The translations under genes were made by a program, and so were the position numbers. DNA of 64,000 nucleotides from Anthoceros angustus (taxonomy: Eukaryota > Plantae > Anthocerotophyta): contig VJWM01000282.1 of NCBI GenBank assembly GCA_010909165.1, forward strand, positions 62,001 to 126,000. Direction: 5' to 3'. Position 1 is the stretch's first letter; the number at the start of each line of letters is the position of its first letter. This document shows positions 18,631-64,000 of this stretch, piece by piece. Below the pieces are notes generated by a model, which was given only the letters and a program-made list of their open reading frames with translations, had not been told where the DNA came from and did no database searches.

Positions 18631-19118
18631 GCGGATAAATTGAAAGAATGGATCATTGCGAGAATGTCTGGTAAAGGTATCCTCAGAAAAGCTGTAATTC
18701 TCCGAATTGCCTCAGATTGATGTTGCAGAGCTTCAGAAATCACTGCAATTTTGTCAAGAGCTGCTTCAAGTCTGACGCCAATGTTTGAGGTTTTGCGCAA
18801 CACCAAGACCTGTAAATCCCTGAGTCGATCAGACTCCAGGGCAAGGTATGATTGGTTGAAGATGAGTTCCTCGTCGTCGTCGTCAGTTTGGTACACTCTT
18901 ACAATTCTTCGTAGGAGCCGGCGATCTGCGTGGCAGGAGCACAGACACGCGTCGAGCTCTGGGTGGGCGTTGGGGCCACGTGATTCAAGCTCTTCACCAC
19001 GGCCTTGTGGAGCCGTGCGTGGGCCAGATCTAGATGAGGTAGTATGTGAAACTGTAGAAAGCACGAGGCCTCGGCTTCTCCTACCGGTTGGCCTTGATCT
19101 GCGTTCAACTGGCGTCAT
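18630..19118 (-). CDS. First ORF of short-LTR element D (helical, gag-position; 3' part lost)
   Basis: Lies downstream of the PBS at 19344. Protein-like up to ...IPLPDILAMIHSFNL, then an abrupt switch to GC-rich sequence. No recognisable gag motif. Confidence 0.45.
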
Positions 19119-19343
19119 GTCGATGCTCTCTACGGACCGGACATAGACTTTCTAGTACAGCCCAATTTCTCTTATGCTAACCATCCTGTGCAGGTGATGG
19201 AGTAGGAGATTCAACATAGCTCGGAGTGCAATCTGGATGCACTCTAAATTGCGTTGAGAACCCTATTTCATCAGATGTACAGTATGCAACATAGAGATTA
19301 GATTAGAATGAATCTAGAGGCGGCATGGATCATAGAGCCTAGT

Positions 19344-19355
19344 GCTCTGATACCA
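19344..19355 (-). promoter_or_regulatory. Primer-binding site (tRNA-iMet)
   Basis: GCTCTGATACCA = reverse complement of TGGTATCAGAGC, adjacent to the LTR. Confidence 0.93.
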
Positions 19356-19524
19356 TGTGAATAAAGCGGAAGCTTGCTTACAAAACAAAAAGTTGTAAAC
19401 AAAATGAATTGATTAAATTACAAAACTTGTATGTGTTTAAATGCTTGTCCAAGTGACTATTACGTTAAACCTAAGACATATCAGTGCTCGGCGGTTAATG
19501 CGTTAGGGTAAATAACCCTTAACA
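19356..19524 (-). repeat. 5' LTR of element D (169 bp), inserted in Copia B RT
   Basis: TGTGAA...CTTAACA, next to the PBS. Interrupts RT after KLSLDQ. Confidence 0.85.
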
Positions 19525-20232
19525 CTGGTCAAGTGATAGCTTCATGCACCGCAGCTCCTGGGTGGAGCGAGGCTTACGGTGTCGGATCTGGAATCGATGC
19601 AAAACCTCGCAATATACTTGGCTTGATGAAGGCATAAGAAGAGTATCATCAAGATGGCGCTGAAGTTGAACTCTCAGGAAGCGGTGGTGCCCCAATATCC
19701 TTCATAATGAATTTTTGGTGCAACATGTCTTTGACCCATTATAACAAAACCGGATTGTTTGATGCGAGATGGCATAGTCAACATATAAGCGAGCAGCAGA
19801 TTTACCATCTGGGGTAGAAATATACGTTTGCATCACGGGATTACGAATCGAGCAATAGATTTAAGAGTACTTATCAATGGTCTTATACCATTCCCGTGTT
19901 ACTTCAAACCGTGAGATGGTCTTCTTGAGATGAGACCCAATCCAGTGCTCGGGGTCCAACAAAACCGCTGTGACATATAGATATCCTCTTCGATTCACCA
20001 TACGGAAGGCGGTACATCCATCCTGTCTGGAGATCCCGGGCATTGGCGATAGAGCAAGGATCATGCGGATGGGATTTAGCAGGCTGAAAGTTTCAGTGAA
20101 ATCTATTCCAGGAACCTGGGTAAAACCCATGGCAACAAGCCGAGACTTATATCTGGCAATCGTGCCCTGGGCATTCAACTTATGCTTGAAGACCCATTTA
20201 CAGCTTACAACCTTCCTATCCTTGGGCAAGGG
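19525..20232 (-). pseudogene. Copia B reverse transcriptase, copy 1
   Basis: LPKDRKVVSCKWVFKHKLNAQGTIARYKSRLVAMGFTQVPGIDFTETFS. Confidence 0.92.
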
Positions 20233-23200
20233 TGTGGTTTGGGAAAACCCGGGGCACTCCCGAGGTCCTCCCACTATAGCGGCCACACTTATCCCACTGT
20301 CGCTTCGTACGTTGGGTTTCGTCCCATGAGACTTGTGTGAAAATTCGAGATCTTGTGGTCACCGATCGCTACCTGCAGAGACACAACTCTCAGCCTTCTC
20401 AACGAGCAAGGCGCCCTCTACTCTCCCTCTTACGTGTTGCTTGCCTTCAGAAAATGACCAATCCTCGTACAGCGACAGCACAATTGAGTCACAACCTGGC
20501 GAGCCTATCACGGGCGAGGAGACCCCCAGTCCACACCGCGATTTCGTCCCTACTTCTAAGACCACTCTTCTCCACTCGAGGCGCTCTTTTTCTTGCGGTT
20601 GGGATTGCGTCCCTTAGGCTCACATGGCCTTCCACTAACACCTACACCTCTAATCCTCTACTCATCTTCTCATCTCCTCATCCTCTTCCTCCTATTCTAA
20701 CCTCGATTCGGGCTTCTTGGTTTCGACTCGCCCTTACGGCTGGCTGGTCGCCTCCACCCGGCAAGTTCTTCCTTGGGCGGTTGCTATGAGTTTGACACAC
20801 GGCGAGAACCTCCGAGTCTTTCACTGTAGTCTACCCTCAAGCCGAGTTCTGGGCATTTGCCACACACCCAAAGCAAAGCAATTTCACGGCAACCATTCAC
20901 AAGGGGGAACTCGTTTAGGCACTTGCGGAGCAAGTCCTCCACCAACACTCAGACCACTTCCTCTCTACGAATGTGTTGGCTCACGGTGACACGAAATTCC
21001 TCTGTAATGGCAAAGGACTCGATGGGCGTGACATGATACTTTACTTTGTGAAATCCTCCTCCTCTTATAGGAGGCCTTCCACATACAACCTCCCTTGGGT
21101 GACCCTCTGCGGTCACCTTTTCCAATTCTATTATTTCCTACATGACATTTATATACGGCACCTAATCTATTATCCTTGGTAAATTCTATTCTAGAACTTC
21201 ACCTAAGTCATCCTTGAAGGATGTCGATTACATCACTATCCTTCCTATTCTTCTACCTAGCATTTATGGCCCTTGACCATATCTAGTCTTCACCTATTGG
21301 GGTGAGCGTGTCGTGGTGGATTGGCTCCCTCGCCCTCCTTTTGCTCTTGCCCTTCCCAGCCTTTGTCGCTTCCTAATGTGTGGGGCAAGTACAATCTTGC
21401 CCTTCCTCCATCTCCGGGGGGCGCGATTCTCCCCTCAATCGCGCTTCGCACCTGGCGCCCCTTCCCTCGTCGCCTGTCGCCCGTTCATCGCACCCTACCG
21501 CGGTGTCGGCGGACTACTGGGTGACCTGTAGTGGTCCCTATCTCCTTCTTCCTTCCTCCTTGGTGAGGTTTCTTGAGTCGGGATCTTCATTGCTCTTTGC
21601 CTTCTTTGGATTTGTCCATACCTATCATAGAGCACCCTTCATCCCCATTGCCCATCGGATTTCTAATCTCTCGGGCCCTTTTGCGTTGGACTCCTCCTGG
21701 TCCCGGTTCCTCCCTTACTCGCGGGGGAAATTCCTCACCCTTCCTTCCTCGGCAGGTCGGACCCGTCCTTAGTCTCCTCCGGTGGGGTTGTCTCTCCCAC
21801 CCCAGTTTCCTCGGGGTGTTGCGGACCCCGGCCTTCATCTCCATCCGGGCCTTCCGGCGACTCCCACAGCTCGTGCGGGCACCCTGCCTACAGTAGTCGG
21901 GACTGGCGTGTGTGGCATCCCCGCAGTAGTCGGACTACCGTGGTAGGGTGGTCACCCGTGGTGGGGTGACCCCTGAGGCGGGTGTCCCTCTCCTTGCTCT
22001 CCGCCGTCTCCCACCCACTTGCCAGCTCCTCCTCGTCTCACTCCTCAGTTCCTCGGAGTCCATTTGATGGCCTCATCAAAATCGGAGGCCTCTGCACTGT
22101 TGCGGCTCCCGATCATCATCATGAGGACCCAATGTCCTCCTCTTGGCCAAGTAAGACTTCGTTGTTGGCCTTCAAGATCTGTTGTGGGTGAGCCCCAAGC
22201 TATGATATTGCATTTGGAGATCATCAATCTCGGCCACTCTCCATCTTGCACCTACCTTGTAGGCATCTCTTGCTGGTTAATTCTCCCACCTTCACATGGA
22301 GGTTACATTCTCCTCCCTCACTTCCTTTATGGTTGGCCAATTTTGCACGAAGGGCATAATCGCCAAAATCTTCTTCCTCACTACCGGCATGCACCACCTT
22401 CTTGTGGCGCTCCTCCTCCAGACCTCCTTGTTCCGGTCCTAATTCTTTGGCAAGCCCTCCTCTCTCTTTTGCGCTCCGCTCCAGCTCTTGGTCTTGTGCT
22501 TCTCCGCGCTCCTCCAAATTATCGGGTCCTTCTCAACTCCTCTCCCATATCCCGGATTTGATAGCTTGAGTAGCCATCACACACTCATGCGTCACTTCTT
22601 TGGATTTTCTCCCTTCCTAGTGCCTCGTTTTCTTCCTTTCTTGCTCTAATTGGGCAAAATGCTCTTCGCCTTTTGCCTCCAAGAATCCTTTTGGGTTGTT
22701 GCGAATGGCTCTTTCTTGAGTGACAACTTCCCTCGGGGCTTCTCCGCGCGTTCCAGGTCGGGGAGCTTCTCCTGACCTTTTCCTTGGCTGCCTTTTCATC
22801 GGACTCCATGGCCAATTGCCACCTTTCTTCCCCATGTCATTTCACTTCCTCTTGGCATGCCCACAAGGAGGCTGCTAGGTCCCTAGCCCCTTCAAATCCA
22901 CGGTGAGTGCTTCACAAGCACCCAGCAATTCTCCTAGGGGTCCTAATTCCACCCCTCTCTTCTTCAAATTTCCAGCTCTCACACTTTCGGGCCATCGGCC
23001 GGCGGGTCCCCTTCTCGCTCCATCCGCTCTCCCACAGTGCGATGGTGGCCGGCGCCTCGCGCGCACCTGTTCCTTCCCTTCCCTTCCCTTGCTGGGCGTG
23101 GTGCACGGCGGTGGGTGCTCCCCCCAGTGGTTGCCTACCTACCATGGTGGTGCCTACCGTGGTGCTACCACCCCAGGTGGGCGCCTCCCTAAGGGTGAGG

Positions 23201-25020
23201 CCGAGTGCCTCTCGTAGGCACAAGGAGATGGTGGGGACTCCCCACCCTCGGGGTCACACTCAGTGGTCCTCTCTCATAGACTACCACCATCCGGCCTTCC
23301 TTGCTTCTTGTTCTTCTCCTTGCTCTGTGGGAAAGATTCCCACTCGGCAACTTTGTTGCCTCCATCTTCCTCCTCTTGCTTCTAGCATGCTTGTGGAGGT
23401 CGACCTCCCCGTCTTCAATGCAAAGGCAAGGCCTTTCCAACCTCGGTGGAGTGGATGACCTCAAAGGGATGCCATGCATCTTCAAGCTCCTTGCTTGTGA
23501 AGTCCCTCGGTTTCCACAAATGCACCAAATAGGTGCTAAGGTAGCAGCCTTGGCCCTTCCTCATCCGAATTTGGCTTGAGGAGCTTCTCGGTGGTGGATG
23601 TAGGCCTCATACATGATAGTCCCCAATCGGCTTGGCTCCCATGGAAATCTTCCACAAAAGTTGGTCTTTGAAATAAGAGGTCGTTGGTAATTACCAACAA
23701 TCTTTGCGAAGAGCCTCCACTTGACTCCTTGATGCTCTCGGTCTTCCGACCATTCTTGGCGTGGGCCTTTTCACTCCTCCATCCATCATGTCGAGAACTC
23801 TGCGGGATGTCGGGAGGGCATCCTCTTCCCTCCATTCCTTTCGAGGCAATTCGAGCTCTTCCTCCCGGTCTTCACAGATGCTCCTTACGGTCCAGCAGTG
23901 AGGATCCGTCTAGCATTCCTTCCGTAGCGGCGGCGCTTCCGATTGATGGAGGTTGATGTAACACTCCTCAATCAATTCCAAATTGGTGTAGGCCCATTGG
24001 CCATCCTATGGATGTTCTCCTCCTCGCCTTGCGAAAATCAACCAAATCTCGGGGTTGAGCTGCCCAAAGCAAGTGAATTGGGGCATCACCTCACCTCCCC
24101 CTGCTCGCTTCTTTCCTTCCTCCTCGCGAGGAAGGTGGCCTTCCTTCCTTTCGCTCGAGGCATGGTGTTTTCCTCAAGTGCAAAGGAAGAGACTCTCCAA
24201 TTTGAGCAAACACCTCAGCACCTCTTCTCCTTCTCTGAGCAACCCCGACTCACACGTTAGGATCCCCCTCTCCCTTTCTTCTTCTCCTCCTCCTTGAGGC
24301 GCCCTCTTCACTCTCTCTCGCCTCTCCCTCTGCTCACCCTTCTCCAACTCTTCCTTCCGGTGTCTTCAGCTCTTGTGCTTCCGCTCCAGGCCTCTCCTCC
24401 ACCTCTTTCTCCTTCCTTTCTTCGGTCTCTGAGGGCTCCTCCTTGGTGCGCCGCTCCTTCTCGCCGCTTCTTCCTCTGGCGGCGATGGCGGCTTCCCTTC
24501 GCTTACGCTCCGACTCGATCCTCTTGGGTTGCGCTCGAAGAAGTTGGGCCCAAAGCGCACTTTGCCCTTTGGATGGCGCCACAGGGCACAACCCTAGATT
24601 GGTTCATCATTCCAAAATCCTAATTCTATAATACCTACCTTTCCTACTACCCTAATTAATTCTAATTACTCTATATATTTTCCCTATTGGTGAGCATATA
24701 TAGTGGATATCCCTCTATTCTAATTTCCTTTTTAGCGAGATTGTCGACCTACGCGGTAGTACCGCGTGCTCCTTTTCTCGGACGGCGTGGTGTGGCGACC
24801 CTGGTAGTGACCTACCAACCTTCGGACGCCCTCACCGCCTCAAATGCGGGGTCATTTGACCCGTTCTTCTTCAAATATCCTTCCTAACAATATCCTACTC
24901 GACTTCAAGATTCTCGAGAAGTTTTCTTGGCATGCTCCTCTTCAATCGTTCTTAGCCAAAAAATCAAACTTGTTGTCTGGCAGATTTAGATTTGGTTGCC
25001 CAAACTTTCTACGTTCCACA
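20233..25020 (-). mobile_element. Giant solo-LTR-like element (4788 bp), copy 1
   Basis: TGTGG...CCACA termini. Flanks AAGGG (20228-20232) and AAGGA (25021-25025). Splits the RT motif TWELVP|LPK. No internal LTR pair seen. Confidence 0.85.
21900..24580 (-). CDS. ORF inside the giant LTR-like element (K/E-rich N-terminus, central globular domain, C-terminal coiled coil); frameshifted as assembled
   Basis: QWAYTNLELIEECYINL, WKISMGA..DWGLSCM, YLSTYLVHLW, LAASLWACQEE, AMESDEKAAK, EEHFAQLEQER are conserved between copies. Confidence 0.7.
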
Positions 25021-25025
25021 AAGGA

Positions 25026-27047
25026 CCCACAGTTCCCAAGTATCGTTCTTTATCGAGGAATCGTACTAAATCATGATGGAAGGGATCAGCTCAATGCTCC
25101 TTGTCAGCTCTGATAACCTCTGTGTATGTCTGTGGGTTACGGTTTTAATGTAAGGAGGGCTATCGGCCAGAAAGGCTTAGGTTGTGGAAGGGTAACCCAG
25201 CTACGGGACGTCTGAAATCAATGGAAGAATAAGGGGGTTCTACCCTTCTTGCTTTGAGGTTCCTAATCTGGCCGAGGATATGACGCTCTACATGTGGCTT
25301 TCGGCCAACAAGTTTGTCGACAACTTTGTGGAAGTGACCGGGGCGAGGCCAGACGTAGTTTTTCATGTAAAGTGCGAATCGGTAGGAATGAAGCAGGAAA
25401 GATTATCTTCGACTAAATCATGATCTACCTCATCCTCTGCACAGGAAGATCCCGAACTTCGACTGTAACATCATCAATGTCGGAAGGAGGTAGATAAGCA
25501 TCCATCGTGGCGGTGGGGTACATGAGGCATTTGGGCGAGATCTTGCAGGGGTTACTGTGCGAGTTACCGCACGCGGCTCGCGGATCTTACGATAGGACCA
25601 TAATCCTAGAATGTCATCTTGGAAACTCTGTAGAATCGTCCAGATCTGTGAGGTCCACATGGGTGACAGTCTCTTGATTGTGTGACAGATGATCAAAATA
25701 TGGCAAACCCATGGGACACACAAGCTCCTTGAAGGTCACACTCGGCAAACAATCTTGTGTCAGATGAATGTGGATCCAAGTGGATCCAGCAACATGGGCT
25801 TTGGCCTCTTCACCCATATCCACAAAGATAAGTGGGCGAGCTCTGTCTTCTAATTTCCTTCTCTCTCTCATGAGGATGTGTCGTCTGTTGGAGAATCGAA
25901 GACAGTAAATTAAGCAATTTGGGCTTCTGCCAAATAACTTCAAGCGGGGTCTTCCATCCTTTGCGCTCGTGAGGAAATGTTAAGAATGTAATTCTTTGTA
26001 ACTCTGTTTGCCGATATACTTTGCTCGCCACGACCATTCTAGCATGCTCCTTGTCATGCCCAGCAGCGTCTGATTATAGCATTCGGCAACACCGTTCTGC
26101 TGCTGGGTATAAGGCACAATAAGCTGGCGTACAACACCATTGTCCAGCAAGAACTGGTTGAAGTAAGCATGTGTAAATTCTGTGCCATTGTCAGTTCGCA
26201 ACTGTTGGAGCAAGCATCCTGTTTGCCTCTGTGCCATGACTAGCCATTCCTGGAAGACCTCAAAGGTATCGGACTTTAAACGGATGGGGTAGGTCCAGGA
26301 GTATCTGCTAAAGTCATCAGTGATGGTAAGATAGTACAACGCACCACCAAGGGAAGGAACATGGATCTTGCCTGAAATATCTGCATGTACTAGTTCTAGT
26401 ATACTGCGATGCGATGGAGCAAGCTGACATGAAATGGAACCTCTTTACTGTTTGGCTATAACACATGCATCGCAAAGTGGCAGGTCTTTGAAACATTTAC
26501 GTAGGGGCTCTCTATAGCAACTTAGGTTCGACATTTTTATCAACTTATCACGATTAGCATGACCTAATCTAGCATGCCATAGACTAGCCTGGGCAGATTG
26601 TGACGACTGGACAGCATGCACGGACTCAGGAGGTATGCAGGTAAGATCAAGCTGGTACAAATCATGAACAAGATGTCCTTCGCGTGACTAGACTATCCCT
26701 CCTCTCTTCTTAAGCTCATGACTAGTAGAAGTGAAGATAAGGTCGTATTAGCGCAAGGACATCGGTGGCTAGCAGAAAGTAGGTGTTTGGCCATGAGTGG
26801 AGCGTGCGAGGACATTATCAAGGTGGAGAGACGATTGCCATTATGCAATCTAAAACGGCATGTGCCTGAGCCTGCAATCTAAAGACACATGCGTGTAAGT
26901 TCGTCCCCAACAACACCTTTGTCGGATGTGGTGAAGGCTGGTGACTAAGCAAATTCTTTGTGCGCCGTTAGATGTGGGAGGTGTGCCGGAATCTAAAAGT
27001 ACCATCACAGTGGGAAGGCAGAAGGCGAAGAAGATGCAAAACAAAGC
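25026..27047 (-). pseudogene. Copia B protease-integrase-linker, copy 1
   Basis: LWHARLGHANRDKL..CDACVIAKQ, YYLTITDDFSRYSW, LRTDNGTEF, YTQQQNGVAE, GYGEEAKA, SLIKNDTWE. Confidence 0.93.
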
Positions 27048-27557
27048 TAATCAGGACTCCGGGGCAGGTATGATTGGTTGAAGATGAGTTCCTCGTCGTC
27101 GTCGTCAGTTTGGTACACTCTGCAATTCTTGGTAGGGCGGCGATGCGTGGCGTGAGCAGAGACAGCGTCGAGCTCTGGGTGGGCGTTGGGGCCACGTGAT
27201 TCAAGCTCTTCACCACGGCCTTGTGGAGCCGTGCGTGGGCCAGATCTAGATGAGGTAGTATGTGGGCGCCCAGAAGCACGAGCCTCGGCTTCTCCTACGG
27301 TTGGCGATCTGCGTTCCTTGACTGCGGCATGTCGATGCTCTCTGGACCGACATAGACTTTCTAGTACAGCCCAATTTCTCTTATGCTAACCATCCTGTGC
27401 AGGTGATGGAGTAGGAGATTCAACATAGCTCGGAGTGCAATCTGGATGCACTCTAAATTGCGTTGAGAACCCTATTTCATCAGATGTACAGTATGCAACA
27501 TAGAGATTAGATTAGAATGAATCTAAATAGAGAGCAGCATGGATCATAGAGCCTAGT

Positions 27558-27569
27558 GCTCTGATACCA
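27558..27569 (-). promoter_or_regulatory. PBS (tRNA-iMet), duplicate copy
   Basis: GCTCTGATACCA. Confidence 0.93.
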
Positions 27570-27742
27570 TGTGAATAAAGCGGAAGCTTGCTTACAAAAC
27601 AAAAAGTTGTAAACAAAATGAATTGATTAAATTACAAAACTTGTATGTGTTTAAATACTTATCCAAAGTGACTATTCGTTTAAACCTAAGACATATCAGG
27701 TATAAACCAGTTAATCTGTGTTAGGGTAAATAACCCTTAACA
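27570..27742 (-). repeat. 5' LTR of element D, duplicate copy (173 bp)
   Basis: TGTGAA...CTTAACA with the same RT junction (CTGGTCAAG) as copy 1. Confidence 0.85.
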
Positions 27743-28484
27743 CTGGTCAAGTGATAGCTTCATGCCTGCAACTCCTGGAGTGGAGACAGGCTTGGCAGTG
27801 TCCAGATGGAATCGATGCAAAACCTCTGCAATATACTTGGCTTGATGAAGCATAAGAAGAGTATCATCAAGATGGCGCACAAGTTGAACTCCGAGAACGA
27901 AGGTGAGTGCCCCAATATCCTTCATATCGAATTTTTGGTGCAACATGTCTTTGACCCATTATAACAAACCCGGATTGTTTGATGCGAGGATGGCATAGTC
28001 AACATATAAAGCGAGAACGACGAATTTACCATCCTGGGAGTAGAAATATACGTTTGCATCACCAGGATTCTGAATGCAGCCAATAGATTTAAGGTACTTA
28101 TCAATGGTCTTATACCATTCCCGAGCTGACTGCTTCAAACCGTATATGGTCTTCTTGAGATGACAGACCCAATCCGGGTGCTCGGGGTCAACAAAACCTT
28201 CGGGCTGTGACATATAGATATCCTCTTCCAGTTCACCATACAGGAAGGCAGTACATACATCCATCTGCTGGAGATCCCAGGCATTGGCAGTAGCAAGAGC
28301 AAGGATCATGCGGATGGACTGAGTTTTTACAACAGGGCTGAAAGTTTCAGTGAAATCTATTCCAGGAACCTGGGTAAAACCCATGGCAACAAGCCGAGAC
28401 TTATATCTGGCAATCGTGCCCTGGGCATTCAACTTATGCTTGAAGACCCATTTACGACACAACCTTCCTATCCTTGGGCAAGGG
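27743..28484 (-). pseudogene. Copia B reverse transcriptase, copy 2
   Basis: QMDVCTAFLYGELEEDIYMSQPEGF, IYGLKQSAREW, LALYVDY, KFDMKDIG. Confidence 0.95.
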
Positions 28485-31400
28485 TGTGGTTTGGGAAAAC
28501 CGGGGCACTCCAGGGTCCTCCCACTATAAGCGCCACACTTATCCAGCCAAATGCGTTGGGTTTCGTCCCATGAGACTTGTGTGAAAGTTCGAGGCCTTGT
28601 GGTCATCGCTACTGAGACACAACTTCTCGACCTTCTCAGCGCAAGGCGCCCTCTACTCTCCCTCTTGGCACCGCTTGCCTTTGCTTGAAAATCGCCAATC
28701 CTCGACCTACAGCGACACAAAACAATTAGGTCACCTTGGCGAGGAGCCTATCAGGCGCCGGGGACCCCCAGTCCACACAGCGATTTCGTCCCTACTTCTA
28801 AGACCACTCTTCTCTCCACTCGGGGCGCTCTTTTACTTGCATTTGGGATTCGTCCCTTAGGCTCTGCACGTGGCCTTCCACTAACACCTACACCTCTAAT
28901 CCTCTACTCATCTTCTCATCTCCTCATCCTCTTCCTCCTATTCTAACCTCGATTCGGGCTTCTTGGTTTCGACTCGCCCTTACGGCTGGCACAGGGTCGC
29001 CTCCACCCGGCAAGTTCTTCCTTGGGCGGTTGCTATGAGTTTGACACAGACGGAGAACCTCCGAGTCTTTCCACAGTCTACCCTCAAGCCGAGTTCTGCA
29101 GGCATTTGCCACACACCCAAAGCAAAGCAATTTCACAACCATTCACAAGGGAGCAACTCGTTTAGGCACTTGCAGGAGCAAGTCCTCCACCAACACTCAC
29201 CACCGACTTCCTCTCTACCCGACTGCGTTGGCTCCACGGCCCGGCACGAAATTCCTCTGTAATGGCAAAGGACTCGATGGCGTGGGCGCAAGACATGATA
29301 CTTTACTTTGTGAAATCCTCCTCCTCTTATAGGAGGCCTTCCACATACAACCTCCCTTGGGTGACCCTCTGCGGTCACCTTTTCCAATATTCTATTATTT
29401 CCTACACTTGACATTTAATGGCACCTAAATCTATTATAATCCTTGGTAAATTCTATTCTAGCAACTTCACCTAAGTCATCCTTAAGGATGTCGGTCTACA
29501 TCACTGTCCTTCCTATTCTTCTACCTAGCATTTATGGTCCCTTGACCATTCTAGTCTTCACCTATTTGGGTGGTGACGTCGTGGTGGATTGGCTCCCTCG
29601 CCCTCCTTTTGCTCTTGCCTTCCCGGCCTTTGTCGCTTCCTAATGTGTGGGGCAAGTACAATCTTCCTTCCTCCATCTCGCAGGCGCAGATTCCTGCCCT
29701 CCGGCAATCGCGCCCCTCCCGCACCTGGCGCCCTTTTCTCCCCTCGTGGCCGCGCCACACCTACGCGGTGTCGGCGGACTACGGGTGACGACTTCTGGTA
29801 GTCGGTCCCTATCTCCTTCTTCTTCCTCCTCCGCGGTGAGGGTTTCTTGGTCAAGATCTTCCATTGCTCTTTGCCTTCTGTTTGATTTGTCCATACCTAT
29901 CATAGAGCACCCTTCATCCCCATTGCCCCACCATCGGATCTTCTAATCTCTCGGGCCCTTTTTGGACTCCTCCTCGGGTCCGGTTCCTCCCCTCGTGGGA
30001 TAGTTCCTCACCCTTCCTTCCTCCGTGGTCGGACCCGTCCTTAGTCTCCTCCGGTGGGGTTGTCTCTCCACCACCCAGTTCCTCTGGGGTATGTTGCGGA
30101 CCCCTTTTCATCTTGAGGCTTCTCGGCGACTCCCAACAGCTCGTGCCCGGGCCCTTGCCCTAGTGGCGGATCTGGGGCGTGTGTGGTCATCCCCCGGTGG
30201 TCAGCGGACTACCGTGGTGGGGTGGTCACCCCGTGGTAGGGTGACCCCTGAGGCGGGTGTCCCTCTCCTTGCTCTCGCGCCGTCTCCACCCACTCGGCTC
30301 CTCTCTCCGACTCCTCAGTTCCTCGGAGTCCATTTCGTGATGGCCTCATCAAAATCGGAGGCCTCTGCACTGTTGCGGCTCCTTGTCATCATCATGAGGA
30401 CCCAATGTCCTCCTCTTGGCCAAGCAAGACCGTTGTTGGCCTTCGATCTGTTGTGGAGGTGAGCCCCAAGTTGTGATGCATTTGGAGATCATCAATCTCA
30501 GTGGGCCACTCTCCATCTTCACACCTACCCTTGTAGGCATCTCTTGAGGTGGTCAATTCTCCCACCTTCACATGGAGGTTACATTCTCCTCCCTCACTTC
30601 CTTTTTGGTTGGCCAATTTTGAAGGGCATAATCAAAATGCTTCCTCACCACCGGCATCCTGCACCACCTTCTTGTGGCGCTCCTCCTCGGACCTCCTTTG
30701 TTCCAGTCCTAATTCTTGGCAAGCCCCTCCTTCTCGCTTGCCAAGCATTCTTCGCTCGGCTCCAATTCTTGGTCTTGTTCTCAGCTCCTCCTCCAAATTA
30801 TGGGTCCTTCTCAACTTCCTCTCCCATGTCCGGATTTGATGGCTTTAGCCATCACACTCATGTCGGCCACTTCTTTGGAGTTGCTTCTCCTTCCTAGTGC
30901 CTCGGCCCTTCCTTTCTTGCTCTAATTGGGCAAAATGCTCTTCGCCTTTTGCCTCCAATCCTTTTGGGTTGTTGCGAATGGCTCTTTCTTGACTGTGACA
31001 ACTTCCCTCAGGACCTTTTTATGTTCTAAGTCGTGTGGAGCTTCTCCTGACCTTTTCAACTTGGCTGCCTTTTCATCGGACTCCATGGCCTCCAATTGCC
31101 ACTTGGTCCTGCCTTTCTCCGGCCATGTCTTGAGGTTTCACTTCCTCTTGGCATGCCCACAAGGAGGCTGCTAGGTCCCTAGCCCCTTCAAATCCGGTGA
31201 GTGCTTCACAAGCACCCAGCAATTCTCCTAGGGTCCTAATTCCACCCCTCTGTCTTCTTCTTGGAAATTTCCAGCTCTCCCGCACTCGGGCCATCCCGGC
31301 CTTGGTCCCCCTCAGCTCCATCCGCTCTCCCAGGAGTGGGAGTGGTGCGGCGCGGCGCCTCATGTTCTCCTTCCTTCCCACCGCGTGGCTGCTGCTCGTG

Positions 31401-33448
31401 GGGTGCCCACCGTGAGGTGCTCCTCTGTGATGGTTGCCTACCTACCATGGTGGTGCCTACCTACCATGGTGGCGCCTGCCACCCTTGGGTGGCGCCTCCC
31501 TCGGTAGGGTGCGGGGTGCCTCTCTAGGCACAAGGAGATGGTGGGGACTCCCCCACTCTCGGGATCACCTCACAGTGGTCCTTCTCTCATAGACCACCAT
31601 TCGGCCTTCCTCGGCGGTTCTTGTTCTTCTCCCTTGCTCTGTGGGGAAAGATTCCCACTCCAACTTGTTGCCTCCACATCTTCTCCTCTTGCTTCTAGCA
31701 TGCTTGTGGAGTCGACCTCCCAGTCTTCCTTAATGCAAAGGCAAGGCCTTTCCAACCTTGGGCTGGAGGTGGATGACCTCAAAGGATGCCATGCATCTTC
31801 AAGCTCCTTGCTTGAGAAGTCCCTCGGTTTCCACAAATGCACCAAATAGGTGCTAAGGTAGAGGCCTTGGCCCTTCCTCATCCAATTTGGCTTGAGGAGC
31901 TTCTCGGTGGTGGATGTAGGCCTCATACATGATAGTCCCCAATCCGGCTTGGCTCCCATGGAAATCTTCCACAAAATTGGAGGAAGTTGGTGAAATAAGA
32001 GTCGTTGGTAATTACCAACCCCAGCACAATCTTTTGCGAAAGCCTCCACTTGACTCCTTGATGCTCTCGGTCTTCCGATTCTTGGCGTGGGCCTTCACTC
32101 CTCCATCCATCATGTCGAGGAACTCTGCGGGATATCGGAGGCATCCTCTTCCCTCCATTTGACCTTTCGAGCAGATTCGAGCTCTCTTCCTCCGGTCTCC
32201 ATACACACAGAATGCTCCTTACGGTCCGGCGGGGATCCGTTCGAGCATTCCTCGTGTAGCGGCAGGCTGCCTCGATTGATGGAGGTTGATGTAACACTCC
32301 TCAATCAATTCCAAATTGGTGTAGGCCCATTGGCGGCCATACACCCATCTAGTTGGATGTTCTCCTCCTCGCCTTGCCGAAAATCAACAAATCCACGGGG
32401 TTGAGCTGCCCGGCAAAGCAAGTGAATTGGGGCATCTCGACCTCACCCCTCACTGGCGCAGCCCCTGCTCTTCTTCCTTTCCTCCTCGCGAGGAAGAGCC
32501 CCTTGGCGGTGGCTCCTTCCCTTGCCTTCCTCCTCGAGGCATGGTGTTTTCCTCTTCAAGGAAGAGATTACTTCCCAATTTCTCAACCTCCTTCTCCCAA
32601 CTTCTCCTTCTGTCAGCTGAAACACCACACACGTTAGTCAGCGCTCCATTGCCAATTCTTCTCGCGCCTCCTTCAGGCGTCTTGATCTCTCTCCTCTCTC
32701 GCCTCAATTGCTCACCTCGGTGCTCCTTCCAACTTGCCTTCCTCGTGTCTCCGCTCTTCCTTCTTCAGCGCTCCGGAGCGCTCTCCTCACCTCTTCCTTC
32801 CTTTTCTTCCACTTCCTGCGTTCTTCCTCCTTCGCTCTCTCCTTCAGCGCGCCTTCCTTCCCTTGCTGGCGGCGGCGATGGCGATGGCGCTTCCTCCTTT
32901 CTTGCGCTTACGCTCCACGGCTCGATCTCTCTTCTCTTTCGAAGAGAAGTTGGCGCTTAAAACCACTTTGCCCTCCTTGGACGCCACGGAGGTTCACAAC
33001 CCTAGATTGGGTTCATCATTCCAAAATCCTAATTCTATCTAATTACCTATTTTCCTATTACTACCTCTAATTAATTCTAATTATCTATTTATATTTTCCC
33101 TATTGGTGAGCATATATAGTGGATATCCTCTATTCTAATTTCCTTTGGCGAGATTCGTCAACCTACGTGATGATCGCGACTTACGCGGTGATGCTTCCTT
33201 TTCTCGACCTACCGGTGGTGGCGACCCTCGGTGATGCGCCGACCCCTTTGCCCTCGCCCTCGTGCGGGGTCGTTTTGACCCGTTCTTCTTCTGGGATATC
33301 CTCTTCTTCCTAACAATATCCTACAACTCCGACTTCAAGATTCTCGAGAAAATTTCTTGGCATGCTCCTCTTCAATCGTTCTAGCCAAAAAAAATCAAAC
33401 TTGTTTGTCCTTTGGCGATTTGAACTGTTGCCCAAACTTCGTTCCACA
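28485..33448 (-). mobile_element. Giant solo-LTR-like element (4964 bp), copy 2
   Basis: TGTGG...CCACA flanked by an exact 5-bp TSD AAGGG (28480-28484 and 33449-33453). Internal ORF about 30200-32990. Confidence 0.9.
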
Positions 33449-33453
33449 AAGGG

Positions 33454-35506
33454 ACCGCTTCCCAAGTATCGTTCTTTATCAAGGAATCTGCACAAGTCCT
33501 TGATGGAAGGATCAATGCTCCTTGTCCAAGTGATAGCCTCTGTGTATGTCTTGGGTTACGGTTTAATGTAAGGAGGGCTATCCATGAAGGCTTAGGTTGT
33601 GGAAGGGTAACCACCGGGGGCGTCTGAAATCAATGGAAGAATAAGGTTCTACCCGCTTGAGGTTCCTAATCTGTTGAGGATAACGGCACTACATGTGGCT
33701 CGACAACAAGTTTGTCGGCCACTTTGTCGTCGGGGGCGAGGCCGGAGTAGTTTTCATGTGAGTTTGAATCGGTGAGAATGAGCAGAAAGATTATCTTCGA
33801 CTAAATCATGATCTACCTCATCCTCTGCGGCGGGAGGATCCCGAACTTGGTAACTCATCAGCGTCGGAAGGAGGTAAATAAGCATCCATCGGCGGGGGCT
33901 GCCAGGCGGTGGGCGGGTATTGTTGCAGTGAGTTGCACTCCTTGGATGCCAAATAGGACCATATCCTAGAATGTCATCTTGGAAACTCGAGAATCGTCCG
34001 GATCACATGAGGTCCACATGGGTGGCGATCTCTTGATTGTGTGACGGATGATCAAAATATGGCCCGGGGACACAAGCTCCTTGAAGGTCCTCACGGCAAA
34101 CAATCTTTGTATGAGTAAGTGGATCCAACAACATAGGCTTTGGCCTCTTCACCATATCCCACAAAGATAAGTGGGCAACTCATCTTCTAATTTCCTTCTC
34201 ACTCTCCGAGGATGTGTCGTCTAGGAATCGAAGACTCGTAAGTGTATGGCTGGGCTTCTGCGCCAAATAACTTCAAGCGGGGTCTTCCCATCACTGCGCT
34301 CGTGAGAAAGCTTTATTAAGAATGTAAGTTCTTTGTAACTCTTGCTGATATACTTGCTCATCGTACGACCATTCTAATGCTCCATGTCCTTGCCGTACGT
34401 TATAGCGATTCGGCAACAGATTACTGCTGCTGGGTATAAGGCACAATATGGCGTACAACACCGTCCGGCAGAGCGGTTGAAGTAAGCATGTGTAATTCAT
34501 GCCATTGTCGTTATAGCGGAGCAAGCATCCTGTTTGCCCTACATGCCATGACTAGCCATTCACGGAAGACCTCAAAGGTATCGGACTTTAAGCGGATGGG
34601 GTAGGTCGGGGAGTATACTGCTAAAGTCATCGATGATGGTAGATAGTACGCACCACCAAGGGAAGGAACATGGATCTTGCAGAAATATACGCATGTACTA
34701 GTTCTAGTATACTGCGATGCACGATGGGCAATGACCTGAGGAAATGGAACCTCTTTACGTTTGGCTATAACACATGCGCATGAGTGGCAGTCTTTGAAAC
34801 ATTTAGGTAGGGGCTCTCTGTAGCAACTTAGGTTCGACATTTTTATCAACTTATCACGATTAGCATGACCTAATCTAGCATGCCATAGACTAGCAGACTA
34901 TCTTGTGGGCATTGTAGGGCGGCATGCGGACTCGGAGGTATGCGAGGTAAGATCAAGGCGGGTACAAATCATGAACAAGATGTCCTTTCCGCGACTAGAC
35001 TATCCCTCCTCTCTTCTTAAGCTCATCGAGCTAGTAGAAGTGAAGATAAGGTCGTGTTAAGGACATCGGTGGCTAACGGTAGGTGTTTGGCCATGAGTGG
35101 AGCGTGCGAGGGACATTATCAAGGTGGAGGGCGATTGCCATTATGCAATCTAAAGCGGCATGCGGGCACACGCAATCTAAAGACACATGTGTATGGATTC
35201 GTCCCCAACAACACCTTATGGGATGTGGTGAAGGCTGTGTTAGTAAGCAGGTTCGCCGTTACAGATGTGGGAGGTGCACGGAATCTAAGTACCATACGTA
35301 TTGGGAAGGCAGAGGCGAAGATGCAAAACAAAGCCGTCATCACAACTGGAGGTTTGATAGCAGATGAAGATGCCTTGGCGACAGAGTGGGCCTCAGCCCG
35401 CTTGGGCTTCTCGACTTTTACGGCCAAGCCTTCTTTTTCGGCCGATCTCTCCCGGTGGCCTGGATGCCACCAATTGCGAGAGCCGATCCGCTTTGTGGAG
35501 GCAGAA
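33454..35506 (-). pseudogene. Copia B gag C-terminus, protease and integrase, copy 2
   Basis: Homologous to 25026-27047. Degenerate zinc-knuckle region at 35440-35500. SLIKNDTWEAVPL at the left end. Confidence 0.9.
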
Positions 35507-39839: not shown

Positions 39840-41570
39840 CACCGCCTTGTCCTTAGTGCTCGGCGCCGTCTATCGCCTCTATCGTTCTAAGGTGGCTGCC
39901 TTTGTTCCACATATGCCGATAAGCTCGCCTCCATTCGTGGACCGTCCATGATAGCGCGCACTTCATCATCATAGCCGGTGATTCTCCCATGCGTTGGCAG
40001 CCCTTCACGCATCTAAACCTTGAAAGTTCGCGGTCTCCACGTGAACCATACCTCGACCTCTTCCTCGTACATATCTAGAAGCAGTGCATCACCTCCATGT
40101 GGTACAACACATGTCGTTGCGCCCGTGCCTCCACGGCATCAATTTGTCTGACCTCCCGACCAAGCACCTTCTCTCCGTCTCGCTCGCACTCCATAGCCCT
40201 CCAACGTGACCATAATAACGCCGCAAAATGCCATCCCATAGTGCATGCTCTCCTCCTTCAAGTACCCCAATGCTATCGGCCTCCGGCCTCGCCGCCGGAC
40301 GGTCCTTCCTCGTCCCAAGGTATCTTTCGGGTACATCCACCTCGTGTGCACCGGTCAGAAACACGCTACCTCGTCCACTAGATGGATTATCGGTGAGTGG
40401 ATATATCAAACATTTTGGAGGAATTGCTTTTCCAGATCGCACATCACCCTCGCTGCCTCCTCTTTCATTGCTTGCTTGGATTTCATGGCGGTATTGTCCG
40501 TGGCAAATCCACTGTCTGACTAACTTGACCACCGCCTTGTACACATCGGGGTCTATGCACCCTCGGAGGACAATAGGGAAGACTACTTCCATCATTATGT
40601 GCAGTCATGGCACTTGCTCAACCTTGCCGCTCGCGATTTTCGCTATGTTAGATCCGTACCCGTTGGCGACTTTATGCGTTTCATTTCCGCATAATAACCC
40701 GTTTGATTCCTCTCGACCGGGACATATGCGGCAGAGCAATGGCCATCCTCTCTGACCATAACCACCCTTTCCCTCCACTCGCTTCCATGTCCATCCGTGA
40801 GGCTATGTCATCTCGGTCTCACATCAGCGTATGCCAAATGGCTTGGCGTTGTTTTTCTCGGCGTGCATAACGTCCTTTGGTGCCATTTCGGCAAAACCGC
40901 CGATGGAGGTCTACAAACAAGGCCGCCGTCGGTTCCAAACCGGCCTCGATGGCGCGGTCCGCGGTCGCGTTCACTCGCGCCATATCTTGATGACATCGGC
41001 GAAGATGGCGAGGCGGTGGGGCCGATACTCGCCACTCCATTGTACCAGCCCGTCATCCACCGTCCCACGTCGCGGAAGCCACCTCCTAAACCAGCATATA
41101 TTTCTTTCTTCAAGTCCGAAGAATACCGTGAATCCAAGTCCTCCCGATCAACACATGCACGGGCCCCTCACTTGCAATCCGTCAGTCCCAAGGCTGGGTA
41201 ATGCTATGACGTGCAAAATCGCTGCTCATAGTTTGAAATGCTGTTTGGATGGTTGACGGTTTGGAGAAGTCTTAGTGTCCATGCCTCTCCAAAGGTCCTG
41301 CAGTCCTCGATTAAAGGCGCCATAAAGACATCGAAATTCTGGCGATGCGAGCCGGCACAATCAACGGCATAATCACATTCGCATCCTTTGTGCTGGCCCA
41401 TGGTGGCATATTGTGCCACGAACAAGAACCATATGGATGTGTTTGCGGACACATGGCCAAATGGATTGAAGCCATCGCACAATGCAAACCTTCGTTTCGT
41501 TGCTCTTCCCCAAAGCCGTCTACTCCATCAAAGCATCGGTGTGTATCGACCATGATGGTCATGTCCAAAT
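39840..41570 (-). pseudogene. CACTA transposase (Transposase_21/DUF4218-type), copy X
   Basis: DGFNPFGHVSANTSIW, NMPPW, MEVVFPIVLRGCID, RPEA..YLKEESMHY. Duplicate of 42888-42995 plus 49753-51040. Confidence 0.88.
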
Positions 41571-42995: not shown

Positions 42996-43247
42996 TTCAC
43001 GAAATATGGAAATGGTGCAAACCAATTGAGTATTTATCAATTACATTATTGTAGAAAATACAAGAAAGCATTAGTAAATTGATTGTAGCAACTAGACTTA
43101 TTCTAGTAGCCAAGAGACATGACCTTTGGCCTAGGGACGTAACCCTAATGAAAGGGTAAGCTAAATAAATTAAAGCTATATACACACATACACTAGATAG
43201 CTAGATATAATAACTATAAGTAATAACTCAACACTCTATCTTCAATA
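42996..43247 (-). repeat. 3' LTR of Copia C
   Basis: Matches 49504-49752. Preceded on the minus strand by PPT-like CAAGTGGGAG (43248-43257). Confidence 0.93.
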
Positions 43248-44353
43248 CTCCCACTTGTTGATTATTGCATAGTGATCTTCTTCTCCATGAGCACCTTTGT
43301 CAGTTGAGCTTGAGTGCGTGTGTGTGTACCAGTTGTGACCCAGGCGACCAGCCAGCGTAATGGAGCGACTCTGTGACAGGTGTGCCATAAGCATAATAGC
43401 TTGCCTTTACGTTCGGTCTTCATTCTTTCCACGACTTCTAGGCGTGGGAAGCTCCTAGGCAAGATGTCTTCATCTTACAGTCATGGACTGTCCTCACAAG
43501 CGCCGTGTCTACGGAGGGATGCTCTAGGTAGGTTTGCGCTGACTAGAACGACCGCCTCCATCTCCCGTGAGGCAAAGGGAGTAACCACTCGAGCGGCAGC
43601 ACAATGGGTCTTGGCGGGCGCGCCTAGGCGGCAGAAAAGACAACGCCGTGCTTGAGGCGCGGGCAGGCTGCGGCAGTAGCAAGTGGAGCAAGAGCCCTGG
43701 AGAGATGGGAGCTCCACCTCGTCGCCTGCACCCAGCACTGTAAGCTTATTTTCTCGAGCTTCGTTTGATGCCCGAGTGCGAGAAGGGTGAGTTCAAGTAT
43801 GCATCTGGCGAGCCACATCCTCCTGCACCACCCAAGTTCCCCGAGCCTAAGAACGAGTCGTCGGAGGAAATTGTTACCCTCGGTTGTGCTCGGTTCCCGC
43901 GCTATTTGGTGTGCTTGGTCACCTGAAGATGGTGAGAGTCCGTGTCCAGGCTCCGGGGCTTTGATGACCACATCATAAGCTTCTATAGTAAGTATTACTC
44001 TTCTGTTTGGGCGTAATCCTTTACGCCACATTTAGTTGCCAATTTTTCCTAAACCCCTGCAGTCTCGGCATGAATTCACTACCTTTTCCTCCCACTCGCC
44101 TCACGGGATCGAGGCAGCTTAGGAGGAGAGGCCGGGGCACCAAGGAGAGGATCTCTCCTACGAGGAGAGAAAGAGAAGAAACTCCCCTGTTCGGTGGTGA
44201 GACATTCTCTACTTCATCGGACAGCTATGCATCTTGGGAGAAGATTTGAGACTCCTCTACTTACATGAGTAGGAGGTCCCTTCTGATCTCTCTCCAAGCT
44301 ATGATGATCCGATTGACAGAATGATTGGGGCTGTTCCTAGCTCATAGGCTAGG

Positions 44354-49503: not shown

Positions 49504-49752
49504 TTACGAAATATGGAAATGGTGCAAACCAATTGAGTATTTATCAATTACATTATTGTAGAAAACAAGAAAGCATTAGTAAATTGATTGTAGCAACTAG
49601 ACTTATTCTAGTAGCCAAGAGACATGACCTTTGGCCTAGGGACGTAACCCTAATGAAAGGGTAAGCTAAATAAATTCAAGCTATATACACACATACACTA
49701 GATAGCTAGATATAATAACTATAAGTAATAACTCAACACTCTATCTTCAATA
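49504..49752 (-). repeat. 5' LTR of Copia C
   Basis: Near-identical to 42996-43247. By eye: one substitution, a 2-bp indel and a 1-bp indel at the end. Confidence 0.93.
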
Positions 49753-60798: not shown

Positions 60799-63700
60799 TG
60801 TGGGAGGGAAAACCCGGGGCTTCAAGGCTTCCCCTCTAGCGCCACACTTATCCTAATCGCCGCTCAGACGTTGGGTTTCATTCCCATGAGACGTGTGAAA
60901 GTTCGAGGTCTTGTGATAACCGATCGCCACACGCAGACACACTTCTCACCTTCTAACAAGCAAGGCGCCTCTACTCTCCTCTACAGCACTGCACCACTTG
61001 ACGCCTCAAAATCACCAATCCTCGACCTACAACGACACACAATTGCAGTGTCCCGCCTTAGCAATGAGGAGCCTATCACGGCGCCTGTGGACCCCACCAC
61101 ACCGCACCTCGTCCCTACTTCTAAGACCACTCTTCCACCTGTGGAGCGCCTTTACTTGCAGATTTGGGATTCCCTTAGGCTCGCCTGTGGCCTTCCACTA
61201 ACACCTACACTCTAATCCTCTACTCATCTTCTCATCCTCTTCCTCCTATTCTAACCTCGATTCGGGCTTCTTGGCTTCGGCTCGCCCTTCGCTGGCTGCA
61301 CAGGTCGGCCTCCACCAGCAAGTTCTTCCTTGGGCGGTTGCTATGAGTTTGACACAGACGTGAACCTCCGGTCTTTCACGTAGTCTACCCTCAAGCCGAG
61401 TTCACAGGCATTGCCACACACCCAAAGCAATTTCACGGCAACCATTCACAAGCAACTCGTTTAGGCACTTGCGGTGAGCAAGTCCTCCACCAACACTCAG
61501 GCCATGACTTCCTCTCTACGACTGCGTTGGCTCACGGTACGAAATTCCTTTACAAGCAAAGGACTCGGTATGGGCGCAAGGCGTGATACTTTGTGAAATC
61601 CTCCTCCTCTTATAGGAGGCCTTCCCTCAACCTCCCTTGGGTGACCCTCTGCGGTCACCTTTTCCAATATTCTATTATTTCCTACATGACATTTAATAGG
61701 CTCTAAGTCTCTTGTATGATCCTTGGTAAATTCTATTCTAGTAACTTCACCTAATCATCCTTAAGGATGTCTCTACACCACCTATCCTTCCGTTCCCCAA
61801 AGCTCATTTATGGTCATTGACCATTCTTAGTCCTTATCTTCTTTGGGGTGGTGACAGCGTGCCTTGATTGGCTCCCTCGCCCTCCTTTTGCTCTGTCCCT
61901 TCCCGGATCTTGTCGTCTTCCTATGTGGGGCAAGTACAATCTGCCCCTTCCTCCACTCCAGCGCCCTCTCATCATTGGCAATCGCCCCCCCCTCGCGCTG
62001 GCGCCCTTTTCTCCTTCCGCGCTGGTCGCGCCATCACCCCGCGGTAGTGGCGGACTACGGGGTGACGACTACCATGGTGATGCGTACCTATCTCCTTCTT
62101 CTCCTTCCTCCTCGGTGATGGCTCCACGGGTTGAGATCCTTTTGCTCCTTTCCTTGTTTGGTTTGTCCATACCTATCATGGAGCATGTCTTCAAAGATCT
62201 TCTCCCATTCGACCGATGTTGTACTAACTCCTGGGCCTTCTTGCGTTGGTCTCCTCTCTCACTCCTCCCTTATCGTGGGGTGAGAACTTCTCACCCTCCC
62301 CTTCCTCGTCTGGGACCCCGTCCTTGTCTCCGGTGGGGTTGTCTCTCACCACCTCCTCCTCCGGGTGTCCTGGACCCCTCCTTCATCCTCGGCCGCCTCG
62401 GGGCGGCTCCTCCCAGCTCGCGGCACCTACCTACCAGTCTGGACTACGGCGTGGGGTGGACTACTGATGATCGGGACTCGTGGTAGGGTGACCCCAGGCG
62501 GTGGGTCCCCCTCCTTGCTCTCACGCCATCTTCCTCTTGGCGCTTGCGCTCTCCTCATCTCCTCCTCAGTTCCTCGGAGTCCATGTGATGGCCTCATCAA
62601 AATCGGGGCCTCACTGCACTGCTGACTCCTTCTGTCATCATCATGAGGACCCAATGTCCTCCTCTTGGCCAAGCCAATCTCATTGTTGGCCTTCAAAATT
62701 CTATTGTGGAGTGGGCCCCTATGTAATCTGCATTTGGAGATCATCAATCTCAGTGGGCCACTCTCCATCCTCACACCTACCCTTGTAGGCGTCCCTTGAG
62801 GTGGTCAACCTCCCACCTTGACATGGAGGTCACATTCTCCTCCTTGCTTCCTCATGGTTGGCCAATTTGCTTGAAGGGCATAATCCGCCAAAATCTTCTC
62901 TTCTCACCACCAGCATTCATGCACCACTTCTTGTGGTACTCCTCCTCTGGACCTCCTTCCTCCCGGTCCAAGTTGTTGGGCAAGCCCTCCTTTTGCACAG
63001 CCCTTCTCGCTCCGGCTCCAATTCTTTGGTCTTGAGTTTGCTCGGCGCTTCTCTCCAAATTATCGGGTTTTCTCAATTCCTCATGTCCGGATTTTGATGG
63101 CTTGGGTGGCCATCACACACTCTTCGTCCATTTGTTGGACCGCTACCTTCTCCCTTCCCAAAGCCTCCATTTTGCCCTTCCGCTCTTGCTCCAATTGGGC
63201 AAAATGTTCCTCCGCCTTCTGTTTCCACGAATCTTGTTGGGTTGTTGCCCGAATGGCTCTCTCCTCGGTTTGTGACAACCTCCCCTCTAGGACCTTCTAC
63301 GCTCTCCGCTGGTCCACAAGATCCCGCTGGAGTTTCTCCACAGCCTTCTCCAACTTGGCTGGCTTCTCATCGGACTCCATGGCCTCCAGCTGCCACTTGG
63401 TCCCTGCCCTCCTTTCGGTCATCTCTTGGGCCTTGACTTCCTCCTGACATGCCCACAAAGAGGCTGCTAGTTCCCTAGCCCCCTTCAAATCCAGTGCTTC
63501 ACAAGCACTTCGGCAATCTCTAGGGCCCAAATTTTGCCCTATGGCTTCTTCTTTGAAATCTTGGGCTCCCTTGCGCCCGGGCCGCCATGCAGTGGGGTCC
63601 CCTCACGTCGCCCCATCCGCTCTCCCCAGTAGCGGAGATGGCGGCTGGGCGCCTTGGCGCCTCATGTTTCTCCTTCCCCTTCTGGCGTAGGGCTGCTCTG

Positions 63701-64000
63701 GCGTGGGTGCCTGAGTGGTAGGCTGCTCCCCTGATGGTCAGCCTACCTACCATGGTGGTGGCCTGATGCTGCACTTGGGTGGGCGCCTCTCTGGGTAGGG
63801 CATAGGCCTCTTCCTAGGCACCACGAGATGGTGGGGACTCCACCACGGGGCATCACCCTCTGTGGTCCCCTCTCATAGACCACCACGGCCCTCCTGGCCG
63901 GATCTTGTTCCTCTTCTTCTCCTCGTTGCTCTTGGGAAGGAAAGATTTCCCATTAAGCAACCTGTTGCCTCACTCCTCACTTGCCTGTGCGCTTGTAGTC
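60799..64000 (-). mobile_element. Giant LTR-like element, copy 3 (diverged subfamily, runs off the window)
   Basis: Starts TGTGGGAGGGAAAACCCGGGG and is colinear with 20233-23380. Left flank differs (ATGTC). Confidence 0.88.

Follow-up and report, generated by a model that had tools for sequence, protein, structure and literature searches.

Solo long terminal repeats (LTRs) arise by recombination between the two LTRs of a single retrotransposon, and they are common in the high-copy families of plants. The large retrotransposon derivatives (LARDs), or Sukkula elements, of barley and its relatives, which Kalendar et al. are said to have described in 2004, reportedly carry LTRs of about 4.5 kb and an internal domain of a size similar to 3.46 kb. 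Ogre elements have LTRs of 1.9-6.5 kb (PMC6431247), those of Retrosat2 measure 3.2 kb, and LTRs above 5 kb are on record (PMC3485330). Here we analysed a 64,000-nt stretch of DNA from Anthoceros angustus (contig VJWM01000282.1, positions 62,001 to 126,000 of the forward strand; hereafter the window), in which a 4,964-bp unit, copy B, interrupts an older Copia retrotransposon. With a probability that we put at roughly 80%, this unit is a decayed solo LTR without coding capacity, left by a high-copy LTR-retrotransposon family whose LTRs are about 5 kb long. LTRs of such a size are unusual but documented, and the unit belongs to a known kind. An earlier reading of the same sequence, the original prediction, had taken it for a giant solo LTR that codes for a protein. 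The solo LTR part of this proposal is upheld by the TG..CA termini, the target-site duplication (TSD), the lack of coding capacity and of terminal repeats inside the unit, the terminus of an independent copy, the copy number and a conserved TATA block. The accessory gene that it placed in U3 is not: there is no open reading frame (ORF) in three copies, no frame shows selection, and Pfam and sequence searches returned no relatives.

The locus resembles other plant solo LTRs in its termini, its intact 5-bp TSD, its lack of internal genes, its membership of a multicopy family and its nesting in a retrotransposon; it differs from them in length, since the roughly 5 kb of copy B stand at the upper end for LTRs. 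LARD and Sukkula elements, whose LTRs are said to be very long and non-coding and to occur in abundance as solo LTRs, show a likeness by description only. Their internal domain is reportedly non-coding, whereas the spacer between the two tandem copies found here is host Copia sequence brought there by a duplication. With the sag gene of mouse mammary tumour virus (MMTV) the locus shares nothing beyond the idea of a long U3; an intact, conserved U3 ORF was tested for here and is absent. Ogre elements (Tat lineage, Ty3/gypsy) belong to the same LTR size class and also reach a high copy number in a plant genome, a likeness in size class; their extra ORFs, in contrast, are part of the internal region and do not fall within the LTR. 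Similarly, rice Retrosat2 and FRetro3 have LTRs of more than 3.2 kb with many putative cis elements, whereas their additional ORF0 is located inside the element, upstream of gag-pol, and not in the LTR (PMC3485330).

Both borders of copy B were read directly. On the plus strand, the left border runs ...GGGCAAGGG and is followed at 28485 by TGTGGTTTGGGAAAACC; the right border runs ...CGTTCCACA up to 33448 and is followed by AAGGGACC. The unit begins with TGTGG and ends with CCACA, that is, it has the TG...CA termini of an LTR within a 5-bp short inverted repeat, and the pentanucleotide AAGGG stands on both sides of it (Table 1). The TG..CA element of about 5 kb with a 5-bp AAGGG duplication described in the original prediction is thus present as stated. 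A repeat search within copy B returned no direct repeat longer than 23 nt and no inverted pairs, and the best matches of a sensitive self-BLAST were only 26-45 nt long, with E values of 0.07 or worse. Neither terminal direct repeats with a primer-binding site (PBS) and a polypurine tract (PPT) at their inner borders, as in a whole element of the terminal-repeat retrotransposon in miniature (TRIM) or LARD type, nor gag/pol, a PBS or a PPT as such were found in copy B, and tRNA and Rfam scans of the element gave no match. The absence of internal direct repeats, PBS, PPT and gag/pol, which had been noted by eye, therefore held in the repeat search and in the self-comparison, with no terminal direct repeats inside the 5 kb.

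The sequences on either side of copy B are two parts of one Copia reverse transcriptase (RT). On the minus strand, the right flank ends with ...NDTWEAVP and the left flank goes on with (P)LPKDRKV..KWVFKHK, also read as (P)LPKDRKV..KWVFKHKLNAQG... The Pfam RVT_2 match of the left flank extends from profile position 9 (at copy A, the tandem duplicate described below) or 17 (at copy B) to position 242, and integrase core and gag-pre-integrase domains were recognised by Pfam farther upstream in the right flank. Since the flanks belong to one Copia RT and the RVT_2 match starts at the left flank, copy B interrupts the very start of the RT domain. Indeed, the host RT frame is contiguous across each insert once the insert and one copy of the TSD are removed. 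An insertion in a Copia RT motif had been predicted, and it is borne out by the position of ..TWEAVP and (P)LPKDRKV.. on opposite sides of the insert. This old host Copia is found by Pfam at E values of 1e-6 to 1e-48, with pieces of a length similar to that of the element pieces. Its RT stops at about 27740 without an RNase H domain, and the next 700 bp (27050-27740, partly AT-rich) gave no Pfam match; the host Copia is therefore also a relic, truncated or composite. Beyond 35334 on the right, Copia sequence goes on with a protease-like stretch.

Self-comparison of the window showed that the segment with copy B has a tandem counterpart, as 18828-27047 and 27050-35334 are 84% identical over an alignment of 8.7 kb. 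The counterpart contains copy A, the same insertion at the identical host site (flank ...CCTTGGGCAAGGG, directly followed by TGTGG), which is 83-84% identical to B; A and B are each bounded by the TSD. The outer host pieces are exactly complementary, with 18828 aligning with 27050 and 27047 with 35334, and the junction of the tandem units reads ..CAAAGC, TA, ATCAGG.. without interruption. The Kimura two-parameter divergence between A and B is 0.11 and 0.20 for the host flanks and 0.18 for the insert; host flanks and insert have thus diverged to a similar degree, which fits a co-duplication. Because the homology of the flanks is that of a simple tandem duplication of a Copia fragment together with its insert, A and B represent one integration event and not two. 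Copy C, which adjoins an unrelated flank, starts at 60799 with TGTGGGAGGGAAAACCC, runs off the window and is 76-81% identical to B. As it has the same TGTGG terminus in a different flank, 28485 is a true border of the family. For the right-hand border at 33448, the evidence consists of the A/B comparison, the TSD and the depth profile given below. All comparisons between copies concern these three, A and B from the same tandem event and C, independent and partial, all within the 64-kb window.

The copy number was estimated from a public DNA run of the same organism (X1), in which 3,188 contigs fell on the element with a summed word depth in the thousands. The contig depth was highest at 28788-29378, the bins beyond 28394-33515 were empty and no contigs fell on the host flanks. 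The family is therefore high-copy, since the contigs pile up on the element and are absent from its flanks. Copy C and the X1 depth together reveal a dispersed multicopy family with a common border at independent sites. Exact-pattern scans of metagenome contigs for further copies found none.

The three copies are not evenly conserved. The best-conserved block lies at 28713-29440, where identity is 93-96% between A and B and 86-89% between B and C, and it contains a TATA-like sequence, CCTCCTATAAGAGGAGG, that is identical in A, B and C and located 804-852 nt (about 0.85 kb) from the end. Conservation over the other 4 kb is patchy, and A/B identity falls to 61% in a GA-rich low-complexity stretch. 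Judged by this profile, the sense strand is probably the minus strand, on which a long, fast-evolving U3 would measure about 4.1 kb, the TATA block would mark the U3/R border and R-U5 would account for about 0.8 kb. The putative U3 holds an AT-rich block (33020-33150) and a tandem repeat with a unit of 19-20 nt (31435-31511). Minus-strand motifs comprise CTATATATGC at 33110-33119, TATAAATAG at 33085-33093, CCTATAAGAG at 29324-29333 and, at the end of the unit, GGTTTTCCCAAACCACA. The AT-rich TATA region, the second TATA-like box near 29330 and the terminal sequence GGTTTTCCCAAACCACA that had been read by eye were all recovered, the box at 29324-29333. A canonical AATAAA was not found in the element. 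Judging from the sequence, the only plausible activity of the unit is that of a relic promoter reading toward lower coordinates. On the minus strand at 29587-29615, about 1.1 kb from the U5-side end, a purine-rich sequence, AGAGCAAAAGGAGGGCGAGGGAG, is invariant in A, B and C; no TG start follows this tract.

The matching TSD on both sides points to an LTR-LTR recombination in which a single element, not a pair of elements, took part, and copy B most probably originated as a solo LTR in this way. We propose that a full-length element would first have integrated into the RT region of an older Copia, making the AAGGG duplication. Recombination between its LTRs would then have removed the internal part and one LTR equivalent, and a single LTR with an intact TSD would have been left. 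Later, the 8.2-kb segment composed of the Copia fragment and the solo LTR would have been tandemly duplicated to give copies A and B, both of which would have decayed. The family of this giant LTR may be undescribed. The finding itself is ordinary: one more decayed solo LTR nested in a Copia, in a known large LTR size class. LTR finders run at their default maximum LTR length would, however, miss an abundant family with 5-kb LTRs, and as a consequence both the repeat annotation and the insertion dating of the genome would be distorted.

The original prediction had also described a minus-strand ORF of about 2.7 kb inside the element. No such frame exists, as at least 20 stops are present in every frame across the span in all copies. 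Between 29400 and 32200 of copy B, stops number 26, 34 and 35 in the minus frames and 20-26 in the plus frames. Over the full length of copy B, no stretch between stops exceeds 174 aa (minus strand) or 211 aa (plus strand); for the other two copies, the corresponding maxima are 123 and 125 aa (minus) and 194 and 221 aa (plus). Slightly longer open stretches on the plus strand are expected from its composition, because it is A-poor (17% A). Pfam gave no match for 20 translated pieces taken from both strands of A, B and C, a word-indexed protein search gave none for two element pieces, and one piece from the best-conserved central block had no match among 1.84 billion cluster representatives. 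Since the equally old host Copia is recognised by Pfam, decay alone does not account for the silence of the element, at least as far as a known domain is concerned.

Traces of past coding were sought by comparing the copies. Among the A/B indels, 27 of 141 are multiples of three, which gives no 3n bias, and the mismatches have no lag-3 periodicity in any copy pair. The Nei-Gojobori ratio of nonsynonymous to synonymous differences (pN/pS) ranges from 0.7 to 1.0 over six frames and three copy pairs, and no frame stands out. In the part covered by copy C, B has 116 minus-strand stop triplets, 75 of which are also stops in C and 70 identical (0.60, versus 0.50 for all triplets); within the span of the claimed ORF, the identical fraction is 0.49 versus 0.44. 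The stops of B are thus kept in C at least as well as other triplets and are not preferentially new. The longest minus-strand stretch free of stops shared by B and C measures 627 nt and fits chance (permutation P=0.67). Only two minus-strand blocks have a shared stop in all three frames (28866-28981 and 29528-29564), and they lie beyond the claimed ORF or at its 3' edge; with an indel about every 35 nt, the frames are disrupted, and the ungapped blocks are short (median 29 nt). Period-3 spectral power in 120-nt windows was 1.05-1.28 for the insert and did not discriminate, as coding controls (1.14-2.56) overlap non-coding ones (1.22-1.71).

One plus-strand stretch was considered as an ancestral ORF and rejected. 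At 29437-31180, in the frame with coordinate mod 3 = 1 (B frame 1), none of 8 B stops is common to C over 1,743 nt (permutation P=0.014), versus 8 of 16 and 12 of 18 in the other two plus frames of the same interval. The stretch contains 18 non-3n indels private to B, every frame of A and of C is interrupted by stops, pN/pS is 0.91 and there is no Pfam match and no relative. We take the absence of shared stops there as chance.

Some observations weigh against the view of copy B as a decayed, non-coding solo LTR of an LTR-retrotransposon family. Within the window there are only solo or terminal copies, none of A, B and C being a 5' LTR, and no element with two LTRs enclosing PBS, gag-pol and PPT. 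As regards promoter and orientation, none of the RNA runs contained the element, X2 giving only two partial matches of 42-46 nt. The copies are all old and rich in indels, which limits the power of the ORF tests for active ancestors. Finally, minus-strand stops are slightly below the local dinucleotide expectation, at 0.90-0.97 times and, in one sub-region of A, 0.81 times that value.

This stop deficit bears on the first alternative, in which intact LTRs of the family would carry an accessory gene in U3, comparable to MMTV sag, and A, B and C would be too decayed to show it. Plus-strand stops stand at 1.04-1.20 times expectation, and the asymmetry between strands has the same direction as in decayed Copia coding sequence, where the controls give 0.71-0.86 times on the sense strand. 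Moreover, a frameshift-tolerant path that minimises stops on the minus strand lies 2-3 standard deviations below base-shuffled controls. Against block shuffles, the minimum stop/shift path gives z values of -1.4 to -3.3 for the minus strand of the element and of -1.8 to -4.4 for the Copia controls, a weak hint that is partly dinucleotide bias. Copy B also has many private indels relative to the majority of family contigs. However, the longest minus-strand ORFs of the copies reach only 123-174 aa, half or more of the minus-strand stops of B are identical in the independent copy C, no frame has a lowered pN/pS, the indels lack a 3n bias, and neither Pfam nor sequence searches found relatives, whereas the equally decayed host Copia was recognised. 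As the copies are old and most of their differences probably postdate insertion, these tests make an ORF in the active ancestors no more than unlikely. A gene inside the giant LTR therefore fails when checked on three copies, and we regard this alternative as unlikely. It is quite improbable, too, that active members encode in U3 a lineage-specific protein without known relatives, of which A, B and C would be relics; if they did, each solo LTR would start as a promoter-plus-gene cassette. The slight shortage of sense-strand stops is a weak hint at such a protein.

Copy A and the 8.2-kb tandem arrangement might also be an artefact of noisy long-read assembly in a repeat. Between the two tandem units (18828-35334) we observed 21-33 gap events per kb, a transition/transversion ratio of about 1.1 and mismatches clustered at lags 1-3, which is unusual for natural decay. 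The differences between A and B look less like ordinary decay than like the noise of long reads in a repeat, so that ORF-based readings of repeats in this assembly may mislead either way. Nevertheless, haplotype or read-stacking artefacts would not come near a divergence of 16% over 8 kb, and 1,269 of the 3,188 short X1 contigs, nearly all on copy B, match at 99% identity or more. An artefact is thus very unlikely, and it would touch the duplication only and not the nature of the element.

It is highly improbable that A and B belong together as the LTR pair of a LARD-like non-autonomous element, or to a tandem LTR array, in which the 3.46 kb of Copia-derived sequence at 25021-28484 would be the internal domain. 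Two direct copies do stand 3.46 kb apart, a spacing similar to the internal domain reported for LARDs, and tandem LTR-internal arrays are known in plants (PMC13570524). However, what lies left of A equals what lies left of B, and likewise on the right; such circularly permuted flank homology is what a tandem duplication predicts. In addition, the host RT frame runs across each insert, and the inner borders lack a PBS and a PPT: read on the minus strand, B is followed by CCCTTGCCCAAGG, without a TGG-type PBS, and A is preceded by ..GGGAACTGTGGGTCCTT, which does not form a polypurine tract.

Least credible of all is that a retroelement integrase inserted an independent LTR-less unit, as the original prediction had offered as its second option, or that the unit is a DNA transposon with a 5-bp TSD: the unit does occur singly with its own TSD and without a partner copy flanking gag-pol in the window, but canonical reverse transcription needs terminal (R) repeats, a PBS and a PPT, without which there is no known RNA route to an integration-competent cDNA, no evidence speaks for such mobilisation, Transib-type DNA transposons make 5-bp TSDs with terminal inverted repeats longer than 5 bp whereas only 5 bp are inverted at the tips of copy B and no Pfam domain was found, the TATA block conserved at about 0.85 kb from one end suits the layout of an LTR, and high-copy families rich in solo LTRs are the norm in plants.

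Table 1. Coordinates, within the window, of the solo LTR copies, their putative parts and the host sequences
Feature	Position	Strand	Basis
Tandem unit A, host fragment and copy A	18828..27047	.	self-comparison
Copy A, same insertion as B	20233..25020	-	self-comparison
Tandem unit B, host fragment and copy B	27050..35334	.	self-comparison
Host Copia RT, C-terminal part (RVT_2 profile positions 17-242)	27740..28484	-	Pfam
TSD left copy, AAGGG	28480..28484	.	direct reading
Copy B, 4,964-bp solo LTR, TGTGG..CCACA	28485..33448	- (putative sense strand)	borders read directly; X1 contig depth starts and stops there at bin resolution
Putative R-U5, about 0.8 kb	28485..29300	-	mostly within conserved 28713-29440; tentative assignment
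CCTCCTATAAGAGGAGG, TATA-like motif, putative core promoter at the U3/R border	29321..29337	-	identical in A, B and C; in best-conserved block
Invariant palindrome GGTGACC-N6-GGTCACC, just upstream of the TATA motif	29359..29378	.	comparison of A, B and C
Putative U3, about 4.1 kb; purine-rich on minus strand, poorly conserved in places	29338..33448	-	composition, conservation profile
TSD right copy, AAGGG	33449..33453	.	direct reading
Host Copia upstream part: RT N-terminus (..TWEAVP), integrase core, gag-pre-integrase domain, protease-like stretch	33454..35334	-	Pfam, translation
Copy C, independent insertion, related subfamily	60799..64000	-	self-comparison, terminus TGTGG

The surroundings of copy C deserve a comment. 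It seems that copy C was inserted into the 5' LTR of another Copia, the gag of which (Retrotran_gag_2) begins about 485 bp farther on. This gag lies on the minus strand within 59612-60798 (Retrotran_gag_2, DUF4219; ATG near 60314), and no pol follows it within the window. Copy C was considered as the 5' LTR of this gag-bearing Copia, and this was rejected: on the minus strand, the U5-side end of copy C adjoins GACATCATTAAATG.., which is not a PBS of the TGG type or otherwise, and a better junction, CA followed by TGGTGTCTGGGGGC, lies about 308 bp inside. This junction, near 60490, looks like the LTR end and PBS of the gag-bearing Copia, copy C being located about 308 bp upstream of it.

Elsewhere in the window, 40299-41566 and 49752-51043 are direct repeats of 1.3 kb with 89% identity, about 9.4 kb apart, and they enclose a minus-strand Copia RVT_2 match (44928-45749). 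Together they probably represent a complete older Copia with LTRs of ordinary size. A 250-bp repeat with 98.8% identity (42999-43248 and 49506-49753) lies inside this older Copia.

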